Translations under genes and position numbers: made by a program | Sequence record: MK250029.1 | Length of the DNA stretch: 64,000 bases | Direction: 5' to 3' (one strand) | Shown: piece after piece, positions 15,029 through 55,980 of the stretch | Layout: every line of letters begins with the position of its first letter | Position numbering within the stretch: position 1 is the stretch's first letter | The notes under the pieces: model-generated | The model's input: only the letters and a program-made list of their open reading frames with translations | Told to the model about the DNA's origin: nothing | Database searches by the model: none

Positions 15029-15619
15029 ATGAGAATAACTACATTAAACCAATTAAAAGAATATACTACATATACATATTATAAATTAAATAAACCTGAA
15101 TATACAAAAAAGAAAAAAGTTTATATTTGTCAACCTATTAACTATATAGATGAAGGATATACACATATGGATATATGGTCAGGATATATATTTTATAAAA
15201 CTAATGCAGTTTCCAGGAATGTAGGTTATTATGGTTTTTTATTAGATAAAGAATCAGATGAAACATATAATAATATAATTAAAAAACAACCAAAATATCT
15301 TGGTAAAATTTCACCTATGTGGTATGTAAATACTACATTGTATAATATACAATCTGAAGAAAATTGTAAGTTATATAAAAATCTGAAATTAGAAGAAAAT
15401 CTATTAACAGAAAATAATAAAGCAGTATTTACAGATAAGCATGAAATAGAACAATATATAGATGATATAAGAAATAATATCATTAAGATTCCAGAAGTAG
15501 AACATATTGTTACAATGAAAACATGGTATAATGATAAAGATGGAAATAAAATAGAAGAAACATCAGTTAGACATTTACCAAGTGGAAAAACAGATATAAT
15601 TAAAACAATAATAAAATAA
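15029..15619 (+). CDS. Hypothetical protein, 196 aa
   Basis: ORF track; no TAG. Confidence 0.7.
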   Translation: MRITTLNQLKEYTTYTYYKLNKPEYTKKKKVYICQPINYIDEGYTHMDIWSGYIFYKTNAVSRNVGYYGFLLDKESDETYNNIIKKQPKYLGKISPMWYVNTTLYNIQSEENCKLYKNLKLEENLLTENNKAVFTDKHEIEQYIDDIRNNIIKIPEVEHIVTMKTWYNDKDGNKIEETSVRHLPSGKTDIIKTIIK

Positions 15620-15630
15620 TGTTAAAATTT

Positions 15631-15663
15631 AAAGTCTTCACAATGGTATGTGAAGACTTTTTT
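15631..15663 (+). terminator. Intrinsic terminator
   Basis: AAAGTCTTCACA...TGTGAAGACTTT plus T-run. Confidence 0.75.
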
Positions 15664-15707
15664 ATTTATTATTATATAAACACTAATTAACTATATTTTT
15701 ATAAAAA

Positions 15708-16844
15708 ATGAATACTGAAAATAAATTTAATTATGTTCTTGTCGGCGGAACATTTAATGATAATAAAGGAAAAGAATCTGGTGTAGTGAATAAATTATAT
15801 CACGCATTAGGTACATTTAATTCTGTTATGTATAATGGTGGTAATTATTTCGATTTGGTTGGTAATGCTTTATCATCTATTACAGAAACAGATCTTATTA
15901 TATGGATGGCAGATGTAGATAATACTAAAGAGAAAATATATCCAGTTAAAAATACAGGTTCTGTATTAATTTGCTCAAAAGTTATTAGAGACGGTTATAC
16001 ATATAAAGATGCAATTGCACGTATATTTAAAATGCATGGTAATGCTGTTATTGCAATCGCAAAAGATAGTAAAACAAATATGTTTATGTTTGAATTTTGG
16101 GATGCATTAGCAAATTGTTGGTACAGTGGTTCTGATATTGAAAAATTAGCATTAACAATATATAGATTTTATATATTCAGTAAAGGCAGTATTCGTCGAC
16201 AAACAGCACGAGATACCTCATTAATTAAATATAATGATGGTAGACCTGATGATTTAAATGATTTTATTAGGTTGAATAATAGTCTTGCTGATTTTATTCA
16301 AACGTCGTGTGGTGATAGGTTTTTCGGTAATTTATCTACACGTTGTCAAAAGTTATTTCCATCAGAACGTGATGGTAAATTTATTTATGTAAGTCCAAGA
16401 AATGTAGATAAACATAGGTTAACTCCTTCTGATTTTGTTTTATTTAATACAGATGATTATACTTATTATTCAGTAGATGAAAAAATAAAGCCATCTGTTG
16501 ATTCTCCTGTACAATCTGAAATATATAAAGAATTCCCATCTATCAATTATATGATTCATGGACATGCATTTATATCTATTATGAAAGAGTTAGATGAAAA
16601 TAATATTCCATGTGCAAGTACAGAGAATTATTTTCCATGTGGAGACTTAAGAGAATTAACAGAAGTAAAGAAACTTATGAAACATATCATATATGATGAA
16701 TGTCATAAAGATTATGGTATAATAAATTTGAAAGGACATGGTTTTTTAATGTTCAGTCAGACTTTTGAACAAATGAAATATATGATTAATGATATATATG
16801 CATTCAAAATGAATGATGGTAAACAATTATTTAAATTTTATTAA
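15708..16844 (+). CDS. Protein with a C-terminal class II aldolase/adducin-like domain, 378 aa
   Basis: FGNLSTR, SPRNVDK, KPSVDSPVQSEIY, MIHGH and LKGHG match the aldolase II pattern, with substitutions. Confidence 0.65.
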   Translation: MNTENKFNYVLVGGTFNDNKGKESGVVNKLYHALGTFNSVMYNGGNYFDLVGNALSSITETDLIIWMADVDNTKEKIYPVKNTGSVLICSKVIRDGYTYKDAIARIFKMHGNAVIAIAKDSKTNMFMFEFWDALANCWYSGSDIEKLALTIYRFYIFSKGSIRRQTARDTSLIKYNDGRPDDLNDFIRLNNSLADFIQTSCGDRFFGNLSTRCQKLFPSERDGKFIYVSPRNVDKHRLTPSDFVLFNTDDYTYYSVDEKIKPSVDSPVQSEIYKEFPSINYMIHGHAFISIMKELDENNIPCASTENYFPCGDLRELTEVKKLMKHIIYDECHKDYGIINLKGHGFLMFSQTFEQMKYMINDIYAFKMNDGKQLFKFY

Positions 16845-16846
16845 TA

Positions 16847-17542
16847 ATGGGAAAATTCAATATTAAATCATTATTTGTTGAAGAAACAAATACAGACGAT
16901 GAAGTTAAAGATACTACAGTCGAAACTTCAAATAATTCAAATAATAAACCAAATGTAGAAAGTAATGTATCTACAACAAACGTACAATCACCAGCATCTG
17001 TTCCAGCTGATGCATCAGTTAATTCTGGAAAGGAAGAAGTAAATCAAGAACTTCTTAATAAACTATGTAATTATCTAGAAACATGTAAAATCGAAGGTGG
17101 TGATTATATGCAACTTAAAAAAGCGGCAAACAGTGATGGAATGAAAGTTATTCCAGATGAAGCTGTCAGATTCCAAGCTGCATATGCAACGCTAAAAAGT
17201 GTAAATCCAAATCTTACAAAAGATATTATTATCAATTCTATTGATACATATATTTCTGAAATGAATAAGCAATATGATATTGCTATTAAACAGATTGAGG
17301 AAAAAAGAAAGATTAATGTAGGTGATAAGAAAAGAGCACATGAGGAGAAAGCTCAACGAATTGCAATGCTTCAAAAAGAGATTGTAGAATTATCTACTGA
17401 AATGACAAAATTATCTGATGAAATTAAAGAAGGTGATGCAGAATGTGATAAGAATGTAAAGGAATTTAGAAATGCTGTAAATGTTATTGTATCTGCATTG
17501 GAATCAGATAAGAAAAAGATTTCTGAAAAGTTAGTAAATTAA
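16847..17542 (+). CDS. Coiled-coil hypothetical protein, first gene of the ABC/PspA-like module, 231 aa
   Basis: Disordered N-terminus and long C-terminal heptad region. Confidence 0.7.
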   Translation: MGKFNIKSLFVEETNTDDEVKDTTVETSNNSNNKPNVESNVSTTNVQSPASVPADASVNSGKEEVNQELLNKLCNYLETCKIEGGDYMQLKKAANSDGMKVIPDEAVRFQAAYATLKSVNPNLTKDIIINSIDTYISEMNKQYDIAIKQIEEKRKINVGDKKRAHEEKAQRIAMLQKEIVELSTEMTKLSDEIKEGDAECDKNVKEFRNAVNVIVSALESDKKKISEKLVN

Positions 17543-17546
17543 TAAT

Positions 17547-17729
17547 ATGAGAGTAATAATTAAAAATTACGATTCTACAAAAGCAAAAGATATTATTATT
17601 CCTGTAGAAAATAATATGGATAAACATGTAGACTTTTCAGGTGGTTATGTTGTATTAAATGATGCAGATGGTAATAAAGTTGTTTATGTAGATTTTATGA
17701 AATATCCTGAAGTAACATTAGATTTATAA
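17547..17729 (+). CDS. Small hypothetical protein, 60 aa
   Basis: ORF track; fills the operon gap. Confidence 0.55.
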   Translation: MRVIIKNYDSTKAKDIIIPVENNMDKHVDFSGGYVVLNDADGNKVVYVDFMKYPEVTLDL

Positions 17730-17744
17730 TAATTAAATAAAAAT

Positions 17745-18809
17745 ATGGCAGAATATAACACAAGTGATATTGTAAATGTAGCAAAAAATACAGTATCAAA
17801 ATGGGAAAAACCTGGTGGAACAACAGGTATGATTGTATTAGGTGTTGTAGTAGGTGCAATTGCAATTAATATTACACCTATTATGAATTTTATTGCAGCA
17901 GCATGCGCAAGCACACTATCTGCAATTGGTATGGCAGCAGCACTTTTTCTAGTTTTATATTGTTTATTTGATCCTCGTATTCGTAATATTGGTTCAACAA
18001 TATATTTTATGATTATGCGTAAGATTGAAGGTCTTCTTGTTGATTATGATCCAATCTCTATTGTTAAGAGAAAGATTATGCAGATGAATAAGAAGATTCA
18101 GGAAATTACCGATAATATGGGAAAGCTTCGAGGTCTTATTGATAAATCAGAAAAACGTATTCAAGATAAAAAGAAACAATGTGATCATGATTTTCAACTA
18201 TTAAATAAGTATAAAGAAACTGGTAAAGCACAAGATGCTGCTGTATATGAACGACAAGTTACTCGCCTTACTGAAGTAATTAAAAATTCAGAAGCACGAC
18301 TTATTCAGTCAAAGCAATGGTATGAAATTATGGGTAAACTGAAACACCAGGCTGAATTAACAGTACTTGATGCAACAAATGAAGTAAATGAACGTGTAGA
18401 AGAGTGGGAAATGATTAAAGCACAGCATAAGGCATTTACATCTATTGTTGGAATTATTAATGGTAAGGATGATCAGTTTAGCTTATTTACTCGTGCAATG
18501 GATCATATGGCTGATGATATTTCACAGAAACTTGGAGAAATGTCATTTATCATCGAGGAAACAGGTGGTTTGATGTCAAAGATTGATATGGATAATCTTG
18601 TGATGTCAGATAAAGCAAATGCACTTCTTGCACAATATAATTCTGGTGGTCTTGATGCTGTTCTTCTTGGAAGTTTTGCAAAGCAACCAATTGAACACGC
18701 ACCAGCAGAAAATGTAGAGTTCAAAGAAGCAGAATTTACAAATTTGAATACTATTACAAATAATAGGAATAATGTACAACAAACATTAGGTCAACCAAAT
18801 TGGTTTTAA
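17745..18809 (+). CDS. Membrane protein with two N-terminal hydrophobic helices and a PspA/IM30-like coiled coil, 354 aa
   Basis: GMIVLGVVVGAIAI and LSAIGMAAALFLVLYCLF helices, then ~200 aa of heptads. Confidence 0.55.
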   Translation: MAEYNTSDIVNVAKNTVSKWEKPGGTTGMIVLGVVVGAIAINITPIMNFIAAACASTLSAIGMAAALFLVLYCLFDPRIRNIGSTIYFMIMRKIEGLLVDYDPISIVKRKIMQMNKKIQEITDNMGKLRGLIDKSEKRIQDKKKQCDHDFQLLNKYKETGKAQDAAVYERQVTRLTEVIKNSEARLIQSKQWYEIMGKLKHQAELTVLDATNEVNERVEEWEMIKAQHKAFTSIVGIINGKDDQFSLFTRAMDHMADDISQKLGEMSFIIEETGGLMSKIDMDNLVMSDKANALLAQYNSGGLDAVLLGSFAKQPIEHAPAENVEFKEAEFTNLNTITNNRNNVQQTLGQPNWF

Positions 18810-18816
18810 TAAAATT

Positions 18817-18854
18817 AAAGAGAATTGTGTAAAAATACATGATTCTCTTTTTTT
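18817..18854 (+). terminator. Intrinsic terminator
   Basis: AAAGAGAATTGTGT...ACATGATTCTCTTTTTTT. Confidence 0.6.
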
Positions 18855-18871
18855 ATTTTAAAAAATATATG

Positions 18872-18879
18872 TATCTTTG
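18872..18879 (+). promoter_or_regulatory. Bacteroidota-type -7 promoter box (TAnnTTTG)
   Basis: TATCTTTG in a context shared by six copies, upstream of ATG 18901. Confidence 0.65.
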
Positions 18880-18900
18880 AATTAATAAAATATTTATGTT

Positions 18901-19230
18901 ATGATAAAAATAGTTGATACATCATATTATATTATTAATAATAAAGAAAAGAAAGAATTATTTATATATTACGATACAGAACATAAATTGGATTGTAATA
19001 TGGATATACTTTCTTTTCAATTAGATTTTAATCTCAAAGATATTGATAATGATAATAAAGATGAAATTATTGAACAATATTTTAAAGATAATTGGACAAG
19101 ATTTTTTATGATAAAATCAGTACCATATGGAGATTTAATGTCTATTGGTATTTCATTTGAACAAATATTAAATATGGTTAATGAAATAGCTAAATCAAAA
19201 ATAATATTTGAAGATTATAAATCAATTTAA
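18901..19230 (+). CDS. Hypothetical protein, 109 aa
   Basis: ORF track. Confidence 0.6.
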   Translation: MIKIVDTSYYIINNKEKKELFIYYDTEHKLDCNMDILSFQLDFNLKDIDNDNKDEIIEQYFKDNWTRFFMIKSVPYGDLMSIGISFEQILNMVNEIAKSKIIFEDYKSI

Positions 19231-19318
19231 TAGACTTTTTAATAAACACGATATAAAAGAAAAATAGAGAATAATATTAAACATTAATTTAAATAACTTT
19301 AATTAAGAATTAAAAATT

Positions 19319-20908
19319 ATGGCAAATGTTGTTTTGCGACCTTGGGTAAAGGTTGTTGGTGTTATTGCAGTTGTTGCTGCAATTATGTTTGGTGCTTCTA
19401 AATTTTTTGGAGGCAGTAATGATGGTGATAATAAGTCATCGAGTGACAGCGGCGGTTTTTTCAGCGGCATGTTTTCTGGTGGTGATGATGATGTAATCAC
19501 CATTGGTACAAATACTTATGCAGGTTTTCTGCCATTTATGTATTTGAATAATGGTCTTGAACCTAATGAAGATTGTCCTATTTATAAGGAATATGGACTT
19601 AAGTTGAAGATTATTGTTCAGGATGATTTTGCTGCAGGACGTGCAGCATTCAATAATGGTGATATTGACATTATTTATTGTACTGCAGATGCTCTTCCTG
19701 TCGAGATGAGTGAAGGTTCAAATATGAATGATGCTCGCTTCTTTAATGTATCAAATTGGTCACGTGGTGCTGATGCTATTGTAGTTAATAAGAGTATTCA
19801 GAATGTAAGTAACTTGATTGGTAAGGTTGTTTGTTGCTCACAGGGTACAGCATCTCATACACTGTTGTTGAATACACTTGAAACAAATGGTATTGGAGCT
19901 GATAAGGTAAATATGGGAAATTCTACAGATCCTAATAAGGTTAATATTAAGGTTGTAGATAACGGTCTTGAAGCTGCTTCTGCATTCCGTGCAGGTTCTT
20001 GTGATGCAGCTGTTGTATTCTCTCCAGATGATCAGGATTTGGTTGCAACTGTAAAGGGTGCACATGTATTGATTTCAACAAAGCAAGCATCTAATATTAT
20101 TTGTGATGGTTTGATTGCAAAGCAGAGCTACCTTGATTCTAATAAAGAGAATGTAAAGAAACTTATTTCTGCATTGTTGTATGCAAATGATAAAATGAAT
20201 AGTGACGAAGCAGCAGTAAAGATTGCAGCTAAGGCTTTTGCAAAGGCATATGGAACAGATGAGAAGTTTGCAATTGATGGTTCTAAGAATATTCATTATA
20301 TTACATTGGGAGATGCACAGAACTTCTTTGGTTTGAATAGTTCATATACAGGTATGCAGGGTGATGAGCTATATTCAAAGATGGCACGTACTTATGAAAA
20401 GTTGGGTCTTTGTAAGAAACCACTTTCATGGCGAAAAGTTTCTTATCCTGATATTATTGAATCACTTGCAGCTAATGCTGGTGAAGTAAAGGGTGATCAG
20501 GCTGCAGAAGCATCAGTAAAGTTTAAAGAAACATCTACATCTGATGCAGAAACAAAGACTGCAATTTCAGATAAGAAGGTAACTATTGAATATCCTGTTG
20601 ATAGTGATATTCTTGATAATAATGCGCAGTGTATTATTGATAGAGAGTTCGCTGGTATTGCAAAGCAGTTTGCAGGTGCAAAGATTCGTATTGTAGGAAA
20701 TACTGATAATACTGGTAATTATGCATATAATGTTGAATTGTCACGAAGACGTGCACAATCAGTTGCAAATTATCTTGTGAAGGAATATGGATTTGATAAG
20801 AATCGATTCATTATTGTTGGTAATGGTCCTAAACGTGCAGTAGAAGATAAGGTAGTAGGAAGTAATAATGCATATCGTACTACAGATTTTCAGTTGGTAA
20901 CAGAGTAA
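19319..20908 (+). CDS. ABC substrate-binding protein (NMT1/SsuA/TauA-like) fused to a C-terminal OmpA-like peptidoglycan-binding domain, 529 aa
   Basis: N-terminal TM anchor; WSRGADAIV, GTASHTLL and IICDGL SBP motifs; OmpA_C motif GNTDNTGNYAYNVELSRRRAQSVANYL...NRFIIVGNG...YRTTDF. Confidence 0.85.
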   Translation: MANVVLRPWVKVVGVIAVVAAIMFGASKFFGGSNDGDNKSSSDSGGFFSGMFSGGDDDVITIGTNTYAGFLPFMYLNNGLEPNEDCPIYKEYGLKLKIIVQDDFAAGRAAFNNGDIDIIYCTADALPVEMSEGSNMNDARFFNVSNWSRGADAIVVNKSIQNVSNLIGKVVCCSQGTASHTLLLNTLETNGIGADKVNMGNSTDPNKVNIKVVDNGLEAASAFRAGSCDAAVVFSPDDQDLVATVKGAHVLISTKQASNIICDGLIAKQSYLDSNKENVKKLISALLYANDKMNSDEAAVKIAAKAFAKAYGTDEKFAIDGSKNIHYITLGDAQNFFGLNSSYTGMQGDELYSKMARTYEKLGLCKKPLSWRKVSYPDIIESLAANAGEVKGDQAAEASVKFKETSTSDAETKTAISDKKVTIEYPVDSDILDNNAQCIIDREFAGIAKQFAGAKIRIVGNTDNTGNYAYNVELSRRRAQSVANYLVKEYGFDKNRFIIVGNGPKRAVEDKVVGSNNAYRTTDFQLVTE

Positions 20909-20917
20909 TAAAAAATA

Positions 20918-20977
20918 TAAACATGCGGTTTATAGAATAATATAATCTTAATTATATTCTATAGATCGCATGTTTTT
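20918..20977 (+). terminator. Long hairpin terminator
   Basis: AAACATGCGGTTTATAGAATA...TATTCTATAGATCGCATGTTTTT. Confidence 0.65.
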
Positions 20978-20986
20978 AATTTAGTT

Positions 20987-21439
20987 ATGAAATATAGAAA
21001 TGATTTAATAGGTAAAAAAATTTTAATTATATGTAATAGTATAGGCAACAGTTATAAAAGGTTATATTGTTCTTATGTATTAGGAAAAATAATTGAATAT
21101 AACCCAGCTACAAATAAGATTATGGTTATTAGAAATACTGGACATATTGGTTCAGCTGTTGAATTTAAAATTAATAATCATGATCCTTTTGAATATCCAT
21201 ATTATTTTGATAATCGGTTCGCAACAAGAGAACCAGAAAATGATAATGAAACATGGTGGTATGTAGCATTTGCTGATGATGAAGCTATACAATTATTAAA
21301 ACAAAATTTATTAAAACAAAATAATAGAAGACCTGTATATAAATCATACTACCTATCAACTGTTTGTTATGGTAAACATAAATCTAAAAAAGAATATTTA
21401 ACATATCTATTAAATGAATTAAACAATGAATCTAATTAA
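20987..21439 (+). CDS. Hypothetical protein inserted in the ABC module, 150 aa
   Basis: ORF track; overlaps the permease start. Confidence 0.6.
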   Translation: MKYRNDLIGKKILIICNSIGNSYKRLYCSYVLGKIIEYNPATNKIMVIRNTGHIGSAVEFKINNHDPFEYPYYFDNRFATREPENDNETWWYVAFADDEAIQLLKQNLLKQNNRRPVYKSYYLSTVCYGKHKSKKEYLTYLLNELNNESN

Positions 21440-22262
21440 ACGTCTATTTAAATTTGGTGGTGATTCTGATTTTGGAACAGTTACCAATGTAATTATTAGT
21501 ATTATTGGTGCAGTTATTATTATTATGGGATGGCATTGTATTTCAGCATATAACGTAGTACCTAGTAATATTCTTCCTGATCCTTTTAAAGTGATTGGTA
21601 GTATTCCAACATTAATTTCAGAAAATCATTTATTTGCAAATATTTGGTATACAGTAAAATTGAATTTATCATGTTATGTGTATGCTATTTTATTTTCATT
21701 TCCTATAGGATTCTTAATTGCATTGTATCCTATTAATAATATCTTATTTGGAAAATATATTAATTCAGTCCGATTTATTCCATTACCTTCTATTACAGGA
21801 ATTTTCCTTGCAATATTTGGTTTGACATTTGGAATGAAGGTATGGTTTTTGACAGTTGCAATTATGATTTATATTATTCCATCTGTTGTAAATAAAGTAA
21901 ATGATTTGCAAAACCCTGCTAATGAAAAAGATAATGTATATTTGCAAACTGCACAGACAATCGGAATGTCTTCATGGCAAAAATTCTGTTATGTATATTT
22001 CCCTTATGTAACAGGTGGTGTAGTTGATTCTTGTATTGACTTATTGGCTATTAGTTATAGTTATGTTGTTATTGCAGAAATGATTTATAAAGATGGTGCA
22101 GTAAGTGGAATGGGTGCATTGATTAATACAATGGTTAGACAATCACAAATGGCATCTGCATTTGCATTACTTTTCCTTATTATTATTATCGGTTGTGTAC
22201 AAGATTTTCTTTTTAAGAAAGGTGCAAAACTATTATTTCCTTACAAATATAAAAATGAATAA
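21426..22262 (+). CDS. ABC permease (SsuC/TauC-like), 278 aa
   Basis: ILPDPFKV, multiple TM helices, RFIPLPSI, EAA loop YLQTAQTIGMSSWQKFCYVYFP, VVIAEM...GMG. Confidence 0.9.
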   Translation: MNLIKRLFKFGGDSDFGTVTNVIISIIGAVIIIMGWHCISAYNVVPSNILPDPFKVIGSIPTLISENHLFANIWYTVKLNLSCYVYAILFSFPIGFLIALYPINNILFGKYINSVRFIPLPSITGIFLAIFGLTFGMKVWFLTVAIMIYIIPSVVNKVNDLQNPANEKDNVYLQTAQTIGMSSWQKFCYVYFPYVTGGVVDSCIDLLAISYSYVVIAEMIYKDGAVSGMGALINTMVRQSQMASAFALLFLIIIIGCVQDFLFKKGAKLLFPYKYKNE

Positions 22263-22267
22263 AAATT

Positions 22268-23212
22268 ATGAGTGATTTTAAAACATTATTCGGACAAACA
22301 AATAATAATCAAGACGAGAAAAAGAATGATATTATTTCTGAACAGAATAATACATCTGTAGATGATTCTAATATACAATCAAAGAATACAAATTCACAAG
22401 TAATTAATACTACAACTGATGGCAAATATGAATGTGAAGATGTAGATGTATTTAATTTTGTAAATATCAATAAATCATTTGGTGATTTTAAGTTATTTGA
22501 TAATCTTAATCTTACTATTAAAGACTTTAAAGATGAGGGTCAATTCATTACATTTATAGGTCAATCTGGATGTGGAAAAACTCAGCTTCTTAAGATGATC
22601 TCTGGAATCTCAAAACCAGATTCAGGTAAGATTATGTTATATGGTAAGGAAATTAAAGAATCTGATAATATACCTATGGTATTTCAGCAGTATTCAAGTT
22701 TTGAATGGATGACTGTTCTAGAAAATATCGCATTACCTATGAAACTTGCTGGCATTGATAAGAAAACACGTGAAGAAAGAGCACGTAAAATTATTAATCT
22801 TATAGGTCTAGATGGTAGTGAAAATAAGTATTGTAGATATGGTGTATTATCTGGTGGTATGTTGCAACGAGCATCAATAGGTAGAGCATTAGCATGTGAT
22901 TCGAAACTATTGATGTTAGATGAATATTCATCTGGTCTTGATTATTTTACAAAATTTGAACTTCAAGATTTGCTTCTTAAAATTTTCAATAATAGAGATG
23001 TTGACAGAACATTTCTTATGGTAACACATGATATTTCAGAGGCAGTTTACCTTTCTAATAGAATTTATATTTTGGAACCAAATCCATGTAGAATTAAGGA
23101 TATTATCGATATTAAATTCAGTCAACCACGAACACAAGCTATTCGTGAAACAGATGAATTTAAAGACTATTACGCAAAAGTTTTAAAGGCATTAAATGAA
23201 ACTGTTAAATAA
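22268..23212 (+). CDS. ABC ATPase (SsuB/TauB/NrtD-like), 314 aa
   Basis: Walker A GQSGCGKT, Q-loop VFQQ, signature LSGGM, Walker B LLMLDE, H-loop VTHD. Confidence 0.92.
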   Translation: MSDFKTLFGQTNNNQDEKKNDIISEQNNTSVDDSNIQSKNTNSQVINTTTDGKYECEDVDVFNFVNINKSFGDFKLFDNLNLTIKDFKDEGQFITFIGQSGCGKTQLLKMISGISKPDSGKIMLYGKEIKESDNIPMVFQQYSSFEWMTVLENIALPMKLAGIDKKTREERARKIINLIGLDGSENKYCRYGVLSGGMLQRASIGRALACDSKLLMLDEYSSGLDYFTKFELQDLLLKIFNNRDVDRTFLMVTHDISEAVYLSNRIYILEPNPCRIKDIIDIKFSQPRTQAIRETDEFKDYYAKVLKALNETVK

Positions 23213-23217
23213 ATTAT

Positions 23218-23529
23218 ATGGTATTTTCAGAATTAACAAATAATAATACAGTTACTATATATACAAAAAATGAGGTAAATACTTATTTTGTAAAACGAAT
23301 AGAATCTAATGATATTTCAACAAATGTCATATTAGAAGACTATAATTATATGATTACAGTTCCAAGAGATGTATCATTTTATATATTACATATAAATAAT
23401 GATATTTCTATTATCACATGTGACAATAGAATAATTGAGTTAATTAATACGGTTAAGAGATTAACAAAAAATTCTATAGGTCTTCAGCTAAATGAACTAT
23501 TTGGAAATGTATTCAAAACAAATATTTAA
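23218..23529 (+). CDS. Hypothetical protein, 103 aa
   Basis: ORF track. Confidence 0.55.
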   Translation: MVFSELTNNNTVTIYTKNEVNTYFVKRIESNDISTNVILEDYNYMITVPRDVSFYILHINNDISIITCDNRIIELINTVKRLTKNSIGLQLNELFGNVFKTNI

Positions 23530-23583
23530 TTATAAATCATGGGTATTTTTTATCCATGATTTTTTTATTTTGAATAAAATATG

Positions 23584-23591
23584 TATCTTTG
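23584..23591 (+). promoter_or_regulatory. Bacteroidota-type -7 promoter box
   Basis: TTGAATAAAATATG-TATCTTTG, just after a terminator hairpin (~23534-23567). Confidence 0.7.
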
Positions 23592-23617
23592 TATTATTAA
23601 TAAAATAATTAATTATT

Positions 23618-24142
23618 ATGAAGCAGTCTAAATTGTATACTAAGAATGAAGGAGGAAATTGTCATAGAGGTCATAATCATGGTTCTGAAAAGAAATACAG
23701 ATCTCGATATGATAGACATAAAAAGATTACAAAATTTGAAATTGATAATGAAATAACAAGGAAGAAATCTCATTATAATAAAAATAAACGAACAAATTAT
23801 GATTATGGGCCTCTATATAATTACTTACTTAAACAAGTAGGAAAGAAATGGGAAACTGTATGGAAAGATATATTTCCACGTGTTGATAATAATCCTGAAC
23901 CTATTGTATATATGGTTATAAATATAAATACACATGGAATTGTTATTACGCATGATATAAGTAATGCAGAACCTATGTTTAACTGTTCATTATACAATAA
24001 TGGTGTTCGTTCTTATTCAACATTGTATGTTGATGAAAATGATATATTACAATTTGTTGATAAAGATTTCAAACCCAATGATAGATATGAAGGTCTTGGC
24101 TTTGGACAATCTTTCAATGGAAAAGAAATTTCTACCATATAA
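23618..24142 (+). CDS. Basic hypothetical protein, 174 aa
   Basis: ORF track; YDYGPLYNYLLKQVGKKWETVW segment. Confidence 0.7.
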   Translation: MKQSKLYTKNEGGNCHRGHNHGSEKKYRSRYDRHKKITKFEIDNEITRKKSHYNKNKRTNYDYGPLYNYLLKQVGKKWETVWKDIFPRVDNNPEPIVYMVININTHGIVITHDISNAEPMFNCSLYNNGVRSYSTLYVDENDILQFVDKDFKPNDRYEGLGFGQSFNGKEISTI

Positions 24143-24166
24143 TTTTTTTATTTGGAATAAAAGGTG

Positions 24167-24174
24167 TATCTTTG
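24167..24174 (+). promoter_or_regulatory. Bacteroidota-type -7 promoter box
   Basis: GGAATAAAAGGTG-TATCTTTG. Confidence 0.65.
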
Positions 24175-24216
24175 TATTGTTAATGAAATAATAAACAATT
24201 AAAAATATAAAGAAAA

Positions 24217-24543
24217 ATGAGAGCAAATTTCACAACAGTTATCAAAAAGAGAGCAATTAAAAATGTACCAGCATTTCATGAGTTCTCTATGAGACAGATT
24301 AAGGTTATTAGTAATTCAGCTAATTATCCAAATTCTGTTACATTGTCTATGGACATTTATTGTGATAATGTTGATGGATATATTTTCAATAATGCATCTA
24401 CAAATGAGCAATATGCACTTACTGCAATTCAACTCAGTGAAGCATTACAGAAGATGATAAATAATAGAAAATGTTATAAGCCTAATAGTGAATCTGATTT
24501 GCTTAGACTTACATTTGATATTATTGAATCTTTTAAATTTTAA
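24217..24543 (+). CDS. Hypothetical protein, 108 aa
   Basis: ORF track. Confidence 0.7.
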   Translation: MRANFTTVIKKRAIKNVPAFHEFSMRQIKVISNSANYPNSVTLSMDIYCDNVDGYIFNNASTNEQYALTAIQLSEALQKMINNRKCYKPNSESDLLRLTFDIIESFKF

Positions 24544-24554
24544 TTGATTTAATG

Positions 24555-24583
24555 TAGACAATAATAAGATATTAGTATATAAT
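24555..24583 (+). promoter_or_regulatory. Sigma70-like promoter TAGACA-N17-TATAAT upstream of the tRNA
   Basis: Exact 17-nt spacing. Confidence 0.5.
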
Positions 24584-24803
24584 ATATAAATTGTTTAATG
24601 AAACAAATTAATGAATTTAAAATTAAATTTANNNNNNNNNNNNNNNNNNNNNNNNNAATTAATAATAAATAACATATAAATAATATAATAATTAAAAACA
24701 AACGCTTATTTAATTTTCGTAGCGTTATGGATAAGTTGAATGTAGAATTCAGAAATTCCTTTTAGGACGAAGATACACCACATGGCGAGGTGGTGGAATT
24801 GGT

Positions 24804-25111
24804 AAAGTGTTTGCCTGCATTAATTTGTAGAATCCATCAAATTCAGTATCAGTTAGGATTAAATTTTGAATATGAGTAGTCGCTATTGACAAAAATATTG
24901 ACAATAATTAAATTATTGTTACCTGAGGAATAAGTGTTTATTAAATAAACAACGAAGAAGCTGACTAAGAAAACCTAAGGTCTTCATAAGAAGATAGCTT
25001 GGTAATACTGAGCCAAGATAATTTTAATTATAAGGTGCAGAGACTATACGGTGGGAACTAATAGCAAGTTAAGATATAGTCCAAACTTTATAGAAATATA
25101 AAGAGTTTTTG
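24804..25111 (+). mobile_element. Group I intron in the tRNA D-loop (308 nt, no ORF)
   Basis: P1 GGUAAA/UUUGCC puts U.G at the 5' splice site; P7 GACTAT 25042-25047 pairs with ATAGTC 25076-25081; terminal G 25111. Confidence 0.85.
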
Positions 25112-25126
25112 AGACACGAGGGACTT

Positions 25127-25466
25127 AAAAAATTTGAGTGCTCTATTGAGAAATCATAGAAGTAGAATCTCCCTAACGAAACGGAAACCTAATTATTGGT
25201 GACAATAATGGTGGTGACGAACTCACTAAGTTGTTATAGAACGCGAATCTATATTAAATGTAAATTGAAGTGTTACAGCATAAATGGCGAAGAGACTATA
25301 GAGGAGATACCTAAGTTAAAGTACACAAAGAATAATCATTTTTGATTATCACTATATATGAAGAATTTATAATAAGGAATGCGCATTACTTTAATATGGT
25401 AGTAAAATAGTCCAGACTACAACATCTTAATTTTAAGGTGGCTTATGTTAAAGTAAGAGTAGTAAG
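25127..25466 (+). mobile_element. Group I intron in the anticodon, U^AA (340 nt, no ORF)
   Basis: P1 ACUUAAA/UUUGAGU with U34.G; P7 GACTAT 25294-25299 pairs with ATAGTC 25407-25412; terminal G 25466. Confidence 0.88.
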
Positions 25467-25519
25467 AAAATCCCTTGGACAGTAATGTCCGTGCCGGTTC
25501 GATCCCGGTCCTCGCTACT

Positions 25520-25556
25520 AAAGTCTGATAACTAATATAGTTATCAGACTTTTTCT
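25520..25556 (+). terminator. Intrinsic terminator after the tRNA
   Basis: AAAGTCTGATAACTA-A-TATAGTTATCAGACTTTTT. Confidence 0.8.
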
Positions 25557-25596
25557 TTTTTATAATATATATAAATTATAATTAATAATTTTAATC

Positions 25597-26733
25597 ATGA
25601 TTACAATAACAGAACAATATATAAAGGATTATAAAGATAAGTTAGATAAAATCGCAAAGTCATTCGATTTGGGTAAACAGAAAATAATCGTTGAAGAATT
25701 ATCTATTAAAGTTTCAGCACCAGATTTTTGGGATGATTTTGAAAATGCAACAACTATTACAAAGGAACTTAATACAGCAAAAGAAAAGATTAAAGATGTT
25801 TCACTTATCAATATGTTAATAGATGATCTTGAAACTGCTTTAATGTATTATAAAGAGTTTGAAGGTAAGGATGAAGAAGAACTTGTTAATCTTGCTAATG
25901 ATGAATTAATTAAAGAATTTAAAATATTTGAAAACAAATATAGATTTGTAGATCCTACTGATTCATTGGGTGCAGTATTAGATATTAATGCAGGTGCAGG
26001 TGGAACAGAAGCAAATGATTGGGCAAATATGTTATTCAGAATGTATGATATGTGGGCTAAATCAAATGGTTATAAATTTAAGATTTTATATTATTCAGAA
26101 GGTGATAAAGTAGGTATTAAAAATGTATCTATTGAAATTACCGGTAATAATGCATATGGTACATTAAAAGGTGAAACTGGTGTTCATCGTCTTGTTCGTG
26201 TTTCCCCTTATAATGCGCAGGGAAAGAGAATGACAAGTTTTGCGGCAGTTTCTGTTGTTCCGTTGGTAGATAATTCAATTAAAGTTGAAATTGATGAGTC
26301 TAAATTAACAATAGATACATTTAGATCTTCTGGTGCAGGAGGACAAAATGTTAATAAAGTTGAATCAGGTGTACGTGTAAATTATATGTATACAGATCCT
26401 GATACAGGTGAAACTGAAAAGATTCAGGTTGCAAATACAGAAACACGTGATCAACCAAAAAATAAGGAACGTGCAATGCAGATTCTTAAATCTATTCTTT
26501 ATAAAAAAGCGTTAGATAAACAACTTGCAAAGAAAAAGGAAATTGAAGATGCTAAACTAAAAAATGAATGGGGTGCACAGATTAGATCTTATGTATTTGA
26601 TGATAAGCGTGTAAAGGATCATCGTACTGGTTATCAAACAACTGATGTAGATTCTGTTATGAATGGAAATTTAAATGGATTTATAGAATCTTATAATAAT
26701 TGGATAATTGAGCAGGAAAATAATAAACTTTAA
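25597..26733 (+). CDS. prfB: Peptide chain release factor 2, 378 aa
   Basis: GAGGTEANDW, GETGVHRLVRVSPY (SPF-like specificity tripeptide), SGAGGQNVNKVES, QIRSYV; no programmed frameshift. Confidence 0.93.
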   Translation: MITITEQYIKDYKDKLDKIAKSFDLGKQKIIVEELSIKVSAPDFWDDFENATTITKELNTAKEKIKDVSLINMLIDDLETALMYYKEFEGKDEEELVNLANDELIKEFKIFENKYRFVDPTDSLGAVLDINAGAGGTEANDWANMLFRMYDMWAKSNGYKFKILYYSEGDKVGIKNVSIEITGNNAYGTLKGETGVHRLVRVSPYNAQGKRMTSFAAVSVVPLVDNSIKVEIDESKLTIDTFRSSGAGGQNVNKVESGVRVNYMYTDPDTGETEKIQVANTETRDQPKNKERAMQILKSILYKKALDKQLAKKKEIEDAKLKNEWGAQIRSYVFDDKRVKDHRTGYQTTDVDSVMNGNLNGFIESYNNWIIEQENNKL

Positions 26734-26790
26734 TATATATTCATTATATAAGTATTTAATGAATTATTTTTCTATTTAAATAAAAATGTG

Positions 26791-26798
26791 TATCTTTG
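26791..26798 (+). promoter_or_regulatory. Bacteroidota-type -7 promoter box
   Basis: TTAAATAAAAATGTG-TATCTTTG. Confidence 0.7.
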
Positions 26799-26838
26799 TA
26801 TTGTTAATAAAATAATAAACAATTAAGAATATAAAGAT

Positions 26839-27057
26839 ATGAAAATTAAGGTTGGTAGAAATAATGAGTTCGTAGAACTTGAAGAATATGATTCAATTGT
26901 AATTATTGATGATAATGGTCATGAATTTCGTATCTCTCCTACACAGAAATGTTGGGGTAAGGGTTTTGAAATTAATGATCCTGATGGAAGTTTGGTAATT
27001 CGTCCATGTGTATCTAATGAAGTAATGGTATTTTCATCTTCAGAAGTTGGTTTGTAA
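26839..27057 (+). CDS. Small hypothetical protein, 72 aa
   Basis: ORF track. Confidence 0.7.
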   Translation: MKIKVGRNNEFVELEEYDSIVIIDDNGHEFRISPTQKCWGKGFEINDPDGSLVIRPCVSNEVMVFSSSEVGL

Positions 27058-27136
27058 ATTATAACTTTCATTAATAACGCAATCACAATAATTATTATTT
27101 TACAGTTTGATTTTAAACTAAATTTAATTATTATAT

Positions 27137-27688
27137 ATGAGTTGTCATACTTGGGTTTACAAACGTATTGATTCAATGTCTCGTGAAGAGATTAATCAAG
27201 AAATTGATTGTGTTATTAATGAACGTTTATCTCGTGCATACATGAGTGAAAATGAAGAGGAATATGCAAATAAAATGGTTAAATTAACAAAAGACAGTTC
27301 AATTTCTCCATTATCATATTCAGATGCAATTAAACGATATAAAGAAGCACGATATGAAACATCACTTATTGTAAAGAAATTACAGGAAGCTAAACGTACA
27401 GGTGATTTATCTCTTATAACAGATATAAATGGATTTGATACAGCAGAAAATAATACATATCTATTTTTATGTAATGATATGCCATTTAGATGTTATGATT
27501 ATACAGATAAACAATGTTATAATAAAGATGAGCTTATTGAATTTGTACATACAGTTGAACCAAATAATATTGCAATATATGATGAAAATAATAATCAGCA
27601 TATAGGTATTCCTGTAGACATAGATGAACGAATATCTGATTTTTTTGATAAACATGGTATTAACAATTTATTAATTGAATTTGGTTGA
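27137..27688 (+). CDS. Hypothetical protein, 183 aa
   Basis: ORF track; MSCHTWVYK start. Confidence 0.75.
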   Translation: MSCHTWVYKRIDSMSREEINQEIDCVINERLSRAYMSENEEEYANKMVKLTKDSSISPLSYSDAIKRYKEARYETSLIVKKLQEAKRTGDLSLITDINGFDTAENNTYLFLCNDMPFRCYDYTDKQCYNKDELIEFVHTVEPNNIAIYDENNNQHIGIPVDIDERISDFFDKHGINNLLIEFG

Positions 27689-27689
27689 T

Positions 27690-28142
27690 ATGAGAACAAA
27701 TATAGATTTACATCCTATTGCTATAGGATATACAAATTGTGATATTGAACTTGATTCATTTTCATTACTTTGTTGTCTTGATGAAATAGGGTTTACATAT
27801 CCAAAAACAGACAAATATTTAAATGTAGGTGCATGTAGGAATTTAAGAGAATTTAATGAGATACATGATAAAATATATTATTATATGATTTATGATTTTC
27901 TATGTTCTACATATGGTATTTCTGTAACATTTTTTGAGGGTGAATCTATTTCATATAATGAACGAGGTGTAATAGAAAAAGTTGAAGTTGATGGAATGGA
28001 TAAAGAATCTGATATATACAAGATTATATCAAATATGGTATTTGATAATATTAATATTGCATATAAGACTGTTGCACATATGATCGTATCAGATTTAAAT
28101 TGGAGACATATTCAAAAGAAAAATTTTTCTAAGATAAAATAA
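27690..28142 (+). CDS. Hypothetical protein, ~150 aa
   Basis: ATG 27690 directly follows the previous stop. Confidence 0.65.
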   Translation: MRTNIDLHPIAIGYTNCDIELDSFSLLCCLDEIGFTYPKTDKYLNVGACRNLREFNEIHDKIYYYMIYDFLCSTYGISVTFFEGESISYNERGVIEKVEVDGMDKESDIYKIISNMVFDNINIAYKTVAHMIVSDLNWRHIQKKNFSKIK

Positions 28143-28212
28143 GACTTTATTATTAAACACATATATAAAGAATAATTAATTTAACATATTAACTTTTAAA
28201 TTTAGATTTAGC

Positions 28213-28776
28213 ATGGGATTATTTGAACTTTTTAATAAGAAAAATGCTGCAGATGTAAGTACATTGTTTACTGATGAAAATAAAGTTTCTATTTCAGCAG
28301 CAGATGCATATAAGAAGTCTCGCTATGGTATCTTGAAATCTGATAAGATGATGCTTGAAGAATTCTTTACAGATGTAAAACTTATGGTAGAGCAGAAGAA
28401 TATGGAGCGTAGTTATTGTGGTATGCTTCAGCTTGATGATGACATTATTAAGTTTCTTCCTCGTATTAAGGATCGGTTGATGCGTCAACTTGGATTTAAA
28501 GTAATCATTCTTGATGATAATTCTGTTATTACAAATAAAGAATTGAAGTCAGAAGATACAATTAAAACAGGTAGTACATTTGTTTTGCTTGTATGGAATA
28601 AACAGGCAATTGAGGAAGTTGAAGAAATGAAAGCAAACAATTTGTTGGAACCTATTTCAGATGACTCATCAATTGCAACAGAAACAGTAGATTCTATTAA
28701 GGATGAAAAGAAAGAGGAAATAACTCCTGCTATTTCTGGAAATTCTAATCCTATGAAGAAACATCTTAATAGTTAA
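28213..28776 (+). CDS. Hypothetical protein, 187 aa
   Basis: ORF track; AAGACT-N17-TATAAA at 28141-28169. Confidence 0.75.
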   Translation: MGLFELFNKKNAADVSTLFTDENKVSISAADAYKKSRYGILKSDKMMLEEFFTDVKLMVEQKNMERSYCGMLQLDDDIIKFLPRIKDRLMRQLGFKVIILDDNSVITNKELKSEDTIKTGSTFVLLVWNKQAIEEVEEMKANNLLEPISDDSSIATETVDSIKDEKKEEITPAISGNSNPMKKHLNS

Positions 28777-28794
28777 AAAAAAATTGTTAAAATA

Positions 28795-28823
28795 TAGACT
28801 TTTTAAATATTAAGACATATAAT
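28795..28823 (+). promoter_or_regulatory. Sigma70-like promoter TAGACT-N17-TATAAT
   Basis: Exact spacing; no ORF before the terminator at 29241. Confidence 0.5.
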
Positions 28824-28829
28824 ATATAA

Positions 28830-29280
28830 AATAAATATAGTGATACTAAATTTAAATATGTTTGATAAGTTATATATTTAAGTCATTGGAAGAATTTAAA
28901 TTATAACATACATATAAAAATTTGATTAAATTATATTTATAAAAAAGATAAGATTTAGATAATTATTTTTCTATATATTTAATATATAGTTTTCTTAGGT
29001 TAACTTCACATATATTATATGTTATTAAGTTAAATATCTAAATAATAAGAATAGAGAAAATGGTGATTATATGATTATACATAAGATGTTTTTTAATTAT
29101 CCTTAGTTTTTAAATGTATAATCATTTCCGTTTAAATGTTTTGGTTTTGGATAATTAACAATCATTTAAACAAATTAAAAAGAAGGGAGTGTTTATCACT
29201 TAGATAAACACAAAAGAAGAAAAGGAAAGATAGATGATAAGAGTGAAAGTCGTTGTGATAACGGTTTTCACTCATTTTTT
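28830..29280 (+). ncRNA. Candidate structured ncRNA of unknown class
   Basis: ORF-free unit between a promoter and a terminator; stems 29071-82/29114-25, 29130-38/29163-71 and 29189-97/29203-11; 10-bp loop-loop complementarity. Confidence 0.4.
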
Positions 29281-29281
29281 T
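29241..29281 (+). terminator. Intrinsic terminator
   Basis: GAGTGAAAGTCGTT-GTGAT-AACGGTTTTCACTC plus T-run. Confidence 0.75.
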
Positions 29282-29316
29282 ATTATTTAATATTTTTATA
29301 TTTAAATAAAAATGTG

Positions 29317-29324
29317 TATCTTTG
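29317..29324 (+). promoter_or_regulatory. Bacteroidota-type -7 promoter box
   Basis: TTAAATAAAAATGTG-TATCTTTG, same context as 26791. Confidence 0.7.
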
Positions 29325-29363
29325 TAATATACTATAATAGTAATTATTAAAATTAATTTATAT

Positions 29364-30953
29364 ATGAAATATTTGTTGAATTGGATCGAAAAAGAATTAA
29401 ATCCAGAACGGCATGTGAGTTCAAAAACAACATCATCTGAATATTATTATTTTTATGGTGCAAAAGTTCGATTTGCTGATCATATTTCAGATAGAAATGA
29501 TAGTGATTTGGAAATTATATTAGTAAAGGATTTAACTGGTCAAAATAAACATTATCTGATAAAGGAGCAGAATTATCCTGTAATGGTATCTGTTCCTGAC
29601 GTAAAAACTTTAAAAATTGTATTATCTACATTTATATTCCAATTTAAGAATAGATATTCAGATAATATAGTAAAAGAAGCAAATAAGTCAGAGGAGAATA
29701 AAAAAATATTAAATACATGTTTAAATCAGCTACGTTCAAATAATAATGCTAATTTAGATATATTTCAAACATTTGATAAATGCATTTATAGTATTATTCC
29801 TCAATGGCATAATATGAAACAAATATATAGAATTATATTCATGCATTTATTTAAATTATGTGGTGATATTGACAAGATTAAGGATATTATTGATATTGAA
29901 TTTCCGAATGATAATCAAAATGATTGGCATCATAAGAATACTAATGATATTATTAATATATTAGTAACATATTTTCCAGATGATTATAATATCAGAAATA
30001 TTATTGGATTAGACGAAACTATTAGTCCTAAAGAAAAATTTGCTAATTGTTTTAATGAATACTATAAGAATCTTGATGTTAATATAGAAGATATGAAGGA
30101 AGAAGATAAATCTAAATTCTTAAATGCATTTGGAAGTCTTCTTGCATTAGATACAAAAAATAAATATGCTAAATGTTCAGATCATCAAAAGAAGTATATC
30201 CGTTCATTACTTAATGAACATATATCATATGATAATATTTTGAAATTTGTGAATAGTATATTTGATGTTTTATTTACACCAAAGATGAAACATAAAAATG
30301 ATGCACCACAAATAAAAATTATTGTTGATAAATTCTTACGGATGTATAATATTGGAATTATTAAATTTCCAAATGAATATGACTTTGATTCTACTTATAA
30401 CAATAATTTTAATCATATTGATGTAATACAGGAAGAATCTACTGATATTGAAAAAACTACTGATGATACTACTATTAATGAAAATATAGAAGTAACGGAA
30501 AATAAGGAACCATGTAATGATATTCAATATGAAACTATAACAGATTATATTCCTGATACTGATATTACTATTAAAGATTCATATAATTATGCATCTACAG
30601 AATTTGATGATATTCAAGATATTCATGAAATGTTTGAACAGAATCAAATTAATATACTTAATGATGTAATTAAGAAAATTAATGATACCAATAAGTATAC
30701 ATCATTTGAAACTAGACGTATTACTGATATATTTGCTTCACATTATTCAGATATATGGGAGAAACTTACATGGACACAAAAAGAACTTTGTTCATCTATT
30801 ATAACAAATGAACGAATGAATTTGAGTGAAACTGATTATATTATCAATAAAATATTTGATAAAACATCGTTTAATTTCCCTGTAACGGAACTTTGTCGTA
30901 AATATATAAAAGAATATAGTCAACGTATAAAGGAGAGCCGTATGGCTGCTTAA
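29364..30953 (+). CDS. Multidomain hypothetical protein with an acidic linker, 529 aa
   Basis: ORF track; no TAG. Confidence 0.75.
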   Translation: MKYLLNWIEKELNPERHVSSKTTSSEYYYFYGAKVRFADHISDRNDSDLEIILVKDLTGQNKHYLIKEQNYPVMVSVPDVKTLKIVLSTFIFQFKNRYSDNIVKEANKSEENKKILNTCLNQLRSNNNANLDIFQTFDKCIYSIIPQWHNMKQIYRIIFMHLFKLCGDIDKIKDIIDIEFPNDNQNDWHHKNTNDIINILVTYFPDDYNIRNIIGLDETISPKEKFANCFNEYYKNLDVNIEDMKEEDKSKFLNAFGSLLALDTKNKYAKCSDHQKKYIRSLLNEHISYDNILKFVNSIFDVLFTPKMKHKNDAPQIKIIVDKFLRMYNIGIIKFPNEYDFDSTYNNNFNHIDVIQEESTDIEKTTDDTTINENIEVTENKEPCNDIQYETITDYIPDTDITIKDSYNYASTEFDDIQDIHEMFEQNQINILNDVIKKINDTNKYTSFETRRITDIFASHYSDIWEKLTWTQKELCSSIITNERMNLSETDYIINKIFDKTSFNFPVTELCRKYIKEYSQRIKESRMAA

Positions 30954-54726: not shown

Positions 54727-55980
54727 ATGGATACAAAAACATATATGGCAATTAAAGATTGTCTTAGAATAATTATTCAAGGATCTGAATTTGAAAACAA
54801 TTTATTTGCAGTCGGTGGATGTTGTAGAGATGAGATTTTAGGAAATAATATAAAAGATTTAGACCTTGTTGTTTCATTGGAAAACGGCGGTATTAAATTT
54901 GCAGAATGGTTGGAAAAGAATCATTATACAAAAGGAACTGTTGTGACATATCCTCGATATGGAACTGCTATGTTCAGACTAAAGGATTTTCCTAATGAAG
55001 AACTTGAAGTTGTACAAACAAGAACTGAAATTTATACAACAGATTCAAGAAAGCCAGATACAACATTCGGTTCACTTAAGCAAGATTGCATGCGTAGAGA
55101 CCTTACAATCAATGCAATTTATTATGATATTTCAAACAGTAAATTTATTGATGTTACAAACAGATCATTTGATGACATTAAAAATAAAATTATTGTAACA
55201 CCATGTGAACCAGATCAGACATATATTGATGATCCTCTTCGCATTATGAGATGTGTAAGATTTGCATGTAAACTTGGTTGGAATATAGATAAAAATGTAT
55301 TCAACAGTATGAAGAAAAATATAGATAGACTATCTATTATTTCAAAAGAAAGAATACAGGATGAACTTATGAAAATATTGAATACACCAAATTCAAAATT
55401 AGGTATTGATTATCTATTTGATATTGATGCAATGAAATTTATTTTCCCTTGTATAAATCATAATATTCCTGGACATTTTATTGATTTAGATAAGACATAT
55501 AAACCTTATTTAAAATTAGCATTAATTAATATTAATAATTCTAATGTTAAAGAAGATTTAATTAATCTTAAATTTTCTACATATGAAATTAATACAATAA
55601 TGAATTATATTAATGTATATCATGATATGTCGAAAATTAATAATCAATCATCACCCAGTGATATTAGACGAATGTTATATAAATGCAAAACATTAAATAT
55701 ATTCTTTGATGTATATAACATGATAGTAATATATGAATCAAATAACAATAAATTAAAATCAATTCATGATGCTATTTCGAAAGGAATGAATTGTAATGAT
55801 TTAATTAAGATGTTTGAATATAAGTTACCGGTTAATGGTAATGATATTATGGATGTATTTAATATTAAACCAGGACCAAAAATTAAAGAATATCTTGATA
55901 AAAGTTTGGATATTGTCTTTGATAATCCTTATATAACGAAAGATGAAATTTTAAATAAGTTAAAAGAGATTAAAAATTAA
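54727..55980 (+). CDS. cca: Class II tRNA nucleotidyltransferase (CCA-adding enzyme/poly(A) polymerase family), 417 aa
   Basis: VGGCCRD, DLDLVV, RRDLTINA, DDPLRIMR and SKERIQDEL motifs. Confidence 0.88.
   Translation: MDTKTYMAIKDCLRIIIQGSEFENNLFAVGGCCRDEILGNNIKDLDLVVSLENGGIKFAEWLEKNHYTKGTVVTYPRYGTAMFRLKDFPNEELEVVQTRTEIYTTDSRKPDTTFGSLKQDCMRRDLTINAIYYDISNSKFIDVTNRSFDDIKNKIIVTPCEPDQTYIDDPLRIMRCVRFACKLGWNIDKNVFNSMKKNIDRLSIISKERIQDELMKILNTPNSKLGIDYLFDIDAMKFIFPCINHNIPGHFIDLDKTYKPYLKLALININNSNVKEDLINLKFSTYEINTIMNYINVYHDMSKINNQSSPSDIRRMLYKCKTLNIFFDVYNMIVIYESNNNKLKSIHDAISKGMNCNDLIKMFEYKLPVNGNDIMDVFNIKPGPKIKEYLDKSLDIVFDNPYITKDEILNKLKEIKN

Follow-up and report, generated by a model that had tools for sequence, protein, structure and literature searches.

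Group I introns in bacterial-type tRNAs have been described only in the anticodon loop; here, a 308-nt insert lies in the D-loop of a phage tRNA-Leu(UAA) gene. The window analyzed here is a 64,000-nt stretch of Prevotella phage Lak-C1 (MK250029.1; window base 24700 = record base 331905; GC content, about 25%), a 540-kb megaphage assembled from a human fecal metagenome. Lak phages read TAG as Gln (PMC6784885, PMC8346664), and many open reading frames (ORFs) in the window need that reading. The gene lies in a block of about 16 kb (15029-30953) that has no in-frame TAG, also holds an RF2-like gene (25597-26733), and is flanked by genes with many TAG=Gln codons, including structural and lysis genes, which fits the idea of early standard-code genes and late recoded genes. 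An intergenic stretch upstream of a 108-amino-acid (aa) ORF (about 24138-24240) is a dispersed repeat with about 30 copies (74 to 96% identity) scattered over the Lak-A1 genome, and may be a regulatory element of the "highly expressed intergenic regions" noted for Lak phages.

The gene was first delimited by reading the sequence and splicing it in silico. Exon 1 (24784-24803; acceptor 5' strand, U8 G9, D-stem 5' strand, and D-loop up to G18 G19 U20), exon 2 (25112-25126; a 15-nt micro-exon with the end of the D-loop, D-stem 3' strand, anticodon stem 5' strand, and C32 U33 U34), and exon 3 (25467-25517; rest of the anticodon loop and stem, long variable arm, T arm, acceptor 3' strand, and A73, with no encoded CCA), all on the plus strand, join into an 86/87-nt class II tRNA-Leu(UAA). 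ARAGORN found no tRNA in the raw window, none after removal of the second insert only, and just a spurious intron-containing tRNA-Phe after removal of the first only; it accepted the canonical tRNA-Leu(UAA) once both inserts were removed. Insert 1 (24804-25111) lies exactly where the preliminary description had placed a D-loop group I intron, between ...GGAATTGGT and AGACACG..., and insert 2 (25127-25466, 340 nt) occupies the classical U34/A35 site. The boundaries of insert 1 are ambiguous by one base on sequence alone, because A starts both the insert and exon 2, but are settled by the group I rules of a U before the 5' splice site and a G as the last intron base. An intrinsic terminator (25520-25562; 15-pair stem followed by a T run) directly follows the tRNA.

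The insertion site is defined by alleles that lack the insert. The 27 nt spanning the exon 1/exon 2 joint (GGTGGAATTGGT followed by AGACACGAGGGACTT) are uninterrupted in 92 IMG/VR phage contigs, about 78 of which are plain tRNA-Leu(UAA) genes; one of them, a 176-kb non-Lak contig, has the same acceptor stem as Lak-C1. Across these 92 contigs, the same 27-nt core sits under about 30 different acceptor stems. Lak-A1 carries an intronless, somewhat different tRNA-Leu(UAA) (...AATAGGT/AGAC...) at the syntenic locus, between the same upstream ORFs and the RF2-like gene. Insert 1 therefore lies between the U that follows G18-G19 and the AGA that closes the D-loop, 3 nt before the 3' strand of the D-stem. 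The same split gene is present in Lak-B1 to B9, four IMG/VR contigs, and two further metagenome assemblies. Sixteen public runs contain at least half of the sampled words of the stretch, and the 20 runs containing it come from 10 studies.

To ask whether insert 1 is a group I intron, we compared it with Rfam and with related phage sequences. Searched alone as a 343-nt stretch, it matched RF00028 (Intron_gpI) at 24919-25103 over model positions 1-253 (41.8 bits; E 1.6e-9), below the gathering score of 50 bits, and the match was missed in searches of 2.5 kb, the 64-kb window, or the whole genome. Further RF00028 matches lie elsewhere in Lak-type genomes (Lak-A1, 209334-209571; Lak-B1, 163701-165063; and the Lak-type sequence G001, 20575-22812), one above the family cutoff at 61 bits; Lak phages therefore carry several group I introns. 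By BLAST, the P4-P6 region of insert 1 is 71 to 79% identical to inserts in the split nrdD of Fusobacterium phage Fnu1 (with a GIY-YIG gene), in a split dnaE-like gene of Bacillus phage G (with a homing endonuclease gene), and next to I-HmuI-like genes in Enterocloster phages, and its S/P9 region resembles annotated group I introns of Staphylococcus, Lactococcus, and Bacillus phages. A conserved 22-nt motif retrieved more than 115 related loci from IMG/VR. Rfam gave no hit on three homologous loci with ORF-bearing introns.

A helix model was then proposed and checked base by base. In P1 (24801-24815), exon GGU plus intron AAA pairs with UUUGCC (the guide sequence), with U20·G at the 5' splice site, and GUUU (24809-24812), immediately 5' of the guide, pairs with exon 2 AGAC (25112-25115) as P10; P1 was also recovered by the minimum-energy fold, although it has only 3 exon base pairs. 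A short P2 and P3 (24833-24838 with 25050-25055) rest on complementarity alone. J3/4 is AAA. The Rfam alignment deletes the P4 5' strand and pairs AGCUGACU with the P3' region, but comparison of relatives showed that P4 is UUCAGUAU (24842-24849) with AUACUGAG (25005-25012). A family-specific peripheral hairpin domain (24850-24963; closing stem CAGUU/AGCUG) is inserted between P4 and P5; the GTATCAG-to-CTGAC spacing runs from 24 to 87 nt in other members and is 115 nt in Lak, the hairpin itself ranges from about 17 to about 105 nt with the Lak copy the longest, and we know of no named counterpart in standard group I subgroup schemes. The 3' half of the core (24964-25111) comprises J4/5, P5/P5a (24973-25003), P6/P6a (25013-25035), P7 (25040-25046 with 25077-25082, with a bulged A), P8 (25056-25070), J8/7 AAGAUA, a 7-bp P9 capped by GAAA (25086-25103), and the terminal G at 25111. 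The R and S elements are CAGAGACUAUA and AAGAUAUAGUCC, respectively.

Covariation across 62 distinct relatives supports P4 to P9. Three positions of P4 covary (A-U/U-A, C-G/U-A, and G-C/A-U), with 100% pairing in 43 distinct members, and the closing stem of the peripheral hairpin also covaries. A covariance model of the 3' half (J4/5 to the terminal G) gave 77 matches in 100 sources; in the resulting alignment, 90.6% of cells were paired against 31 to 45% for slid controls, all 36 pairs showed changes on both sides, and the covariation score was 0.403 against 0.055 or less for the controls, although the alignment was fitted to the structure of the model, which biases it toward that structure. 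The RNA is very AT rich, and its folding energy is not clearly better than that of shuffled sequences (z −1.77).

Several lines of evidence argue that the mature tRNA is made and hence that both introns are removed. Between the Lak-C1 and Lak-B1 sequences, intron 1 is 97.7% and intron 2 is 93% identical, and the D-arm and anticodon-arm exons are identical, yet the acceptor stem (24784-24790 with 25510-25516 in Lak-C1) differs at 5 of its 7 pairs (GGCGAGG/CCTCGCT and GGTCCAT/ATGGACT), every change being compensated on the other strand about 700 nt away; the variable arm also changed compensatorily. Five Lak variants splice in silico to tRNA-Leu(UAA). The nine variable sites of intron 1 among Lak variants lie in the P1 loop, the peripheral domain (six of the nine), hairpin loops, or the nonconserved terminal P4 pair, and none lies in a core helix. 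TTA makes up 63% of leucine codons in the ORFs of the window, and no other uninterrupted Leu(UAA)-type D-loop-to-anticodon segment exists in Lak-C1 or Lak-B1. The window also encodes a tRNA nucleotidyltransferase (CCA-adding enzyme; 54727-55980; PHROG 2244, E 3e-51). No spliced junction was seen in contigs from four metatranscriptome runs, which cover only unspliced exon-intron borders, together with many fragments of other members of the intron 2 family, but this is uninformative rather than negative, because tRNAs are poorly captured and the contigs may be DNA or precursor.

We therefore consider it likely (probability about 0.8) that intron 1 is a complete, ORF-less group I ribozyme located in the D-loop directly after G18-G19-U20, with catalysis itself inferred. 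In the inferred mechanism, the primary transcript runs to the terminator, the guide GCC pairs with exon GGU, external guanosine attacks after U20, GUUU aligns exon 2 as P10, and the terminal G docks in the P7 pocket before exon ligation. The 3-bp D-stem that flanks the insertion probably helps to hold the two splice sites together, the role that the anticodon stem plays for classical tRNA introns. Intron 2 would be removed likewise from the anticodon loop, so that exon 2 serves as the 3' exon for one intron and the 5' exon for the other. The product, after CCA addition, would be the only phage tRNA for TTA, its commonest leucine codon.

Among alternatives, it is possible, though unlikely, that the intron is a genuine group I RNA that cannot splice alone and needs a phage or host protein (maturase or chaperone) or prior removal of intron 2. 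The weak predicted stability, the short P1 and P3, and the large 114-nt peripheral domain of unknown role are in its favor, and many organellar and phage group I introns probably depend on proteins in vivo. However, all core elements are present, including a GAAA L9 and a receptor-like CCUAAG motif in P5 that normally stabilize compact self-splicing introns, and no maturase-like ORF lies in or next to the gene. A more doubtful idea is that the two introns are kept because, by interrupting the D-loop and anticodon-loop DNA, they make the gene immune to a selfish nuclease carried by competing Lak phages. At this locus, Lak-A1 (MK250015.1, 367137-368055) and Lak-A2 have an intronless tRNA-Leu followed by a multicopy ORF of 258 to 267 aa with five in-frame TAGs and two C2H2-like zinc fingers, which is absent from this locus in Lak-C1 and Lak-B; a free-standing nuclease targeting an intron insertion site appears to exist in cyanophage psbA, and T4 SegB acts in a tRNA gene cluster (PMC13096335). 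Yet the ORF had no match in PHROGs, NCBIfam, or PDB sequences beyond weak C2H2 fingers, its PD-(D/E)XK-like C-terminal motif was seen by eye only, and nuclease activity and target are conjecture. Similarly improbable is that the split gene is dead, intron 1 being a decaying remnant and the phage relying on host tRNA-Leu(UAA): the lack of observed spliced RNA, the subthreshold Rfam score, and the short P1 would fit, but the compensated acceptor stem and variable arm, the absence of substitutions in core helices, the terminator and A73 kept in both lineages, and the status of the gene as the sole Leu(UAA) gene argue against it. An assembly chimera can be all but dismissed, because, although this is a metagenome-assembled genome with a masked run about 130 nt upstream of the gene (24633-24656), the same architecture appears in more than 15 independent assemblies and single contigs span exon 1 to intron 2.

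That known tRNA group I introns sit in the anticodon loop, as the preliminary description held, agrees with published reviews (PMC4033280, PMC3984707, PMC8450103), and no D-loop case was found in the literature that could be searched, which excludes most subscription journals. Like the classical anticodon-loop introns of the cyanobacterial/plastid tRNA-Leu(UAA) type, intron 1 is a small, ORF-less intron in a hairpin loop whose stem can clamp the exons, and even the isoacceptor is the same. It differs in its position after U20, in its phage host, in the hairpin between P4 and P5, and in its nearest relatives; those checked all lie in phage protein genes or beside homing endonuclease genes, and none of 38 family 3' flanks carries a T-loop motif. 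With phage protein-gene introns (for example, those in Fnu1 nrdD, the phage G dnaE-like gene, and Staphylococcus Twort/K-like and Bacillus SPO1-like phages) it shares conserved segments (GUAUCAG...CUGACUAAGA..CCUAAGGUC; R and S elements), a covarying P4-P9, and the lineage-specific hairpin, but those relatives interrupt protein-coding genes and often carry GIY-YIG or HNH homing endonuclease ORFs, while the Lak copy is ORF-less, sits in a tRNA, and has a different 5' region (P1-P3) and the longest peripheral domain. The "enigmatic" introns previously reported in Lak tRNAs (PMC6784885) are about 90 nt long, lie 3' of the anticodon in tRNA-Tyr, Phe, Gly, and Thr, were found with tRNAscan in eukaryote mode, are highly conserved across cohorts, and were left unclassified; tRNA-Leu is not listed, Lak-B is credited with one intron only, and the split Leu(UAA) gene appears to have been missed. 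Introns at D-arm positions, and several introns in one tRNA gene, are known in Archaea and Cyanidioschyzon, but these are bulge-helix-bulge introns cut by protein endonucleases, and the plastid trnG(UCC) intron in the D-stem is likely a group II intron.

Intron 2 has a group I-like P1 (ACUU/GAGU), R/S elements, and a terminal G but no Rfam match. Its relatives lie in DNA primase genes of crAss-like phages (cr116_1, IAS virus), at a second locus in Lak-A1 and Lak-C1 (host gene in Lak-A1 unidentified), and in other phage tRNA-Leu genes. About 13 of the 92 phage tRNA-Leu(UAA) genes sampled carry inserts of 440 to 977 nt at U34/A35, from several families and all ending in G, and one of them (contig L032, 4401-4588) scores 67.8 bits on RF00028; group I introns in phage tRNA anticodon loops therefore seem widespread.

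The preliminary description was correct that neither intron encodes a nuclease, as no ORF longer than 68 aa overlaps the gene under code 11 or 15. Its three candidate endonucleases in the window were not confirmed: 40 ORFs gave no PHROG endonuclease match, and a motif scan found no GIY-YIG, LAGLIDADG, or PD-(D/E)XK-like signature. Intron 1 is single copy per genome, absent from Lak-A, and found only in this gene; its start occurs in Lak-type contexts only, in both viral and metagenome contigs, and an allele with only the D-loop intron occurs in no viral contig. It therefore appears to be a one-off capture, most likely from the pool of phage protein-gene introns, for which reverse splicing into the exposed GGU is a plausible route. 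Tentatively, and with somewhat less than even odds, this would be the first group I intron found outside the anticodon loop of any tRNA and the first tRNA gene split by two group I ribozymes sharing a 15-nt micro-exon; if it was captured by reverse splicing into the universally conserved G18-G19-U20, almost any tRNA is a potential target site, and maturation of the key TTA-decoding tRNA would be gated by two ribozymes, giving a possible timing or immunity device in a recoded megaphage.

The anticodon-loop rule has shaped both theory (exon clamping by the anticodon stem and a common "canonical" site) and software, and tRNAscan and ARAGORN miss this gene entirely. The finding that phage tRNAs can host group I introns revises the generalization in a 2014 review that all phage group I introns then known were in protein genes, corrects the published tRNA and intron inventory of Lak megaphages, and offers a compact natural case of two inferred ribozymes processing one 86-nt product. 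A D-loop ribozyme would show that another tRNA hairpin loop can host a group I intron, with the near-universal GGU as the P1 target, and split tRNAs of this kind may be hidden among tRNAs counted as absent from phage and bacterial genomes.
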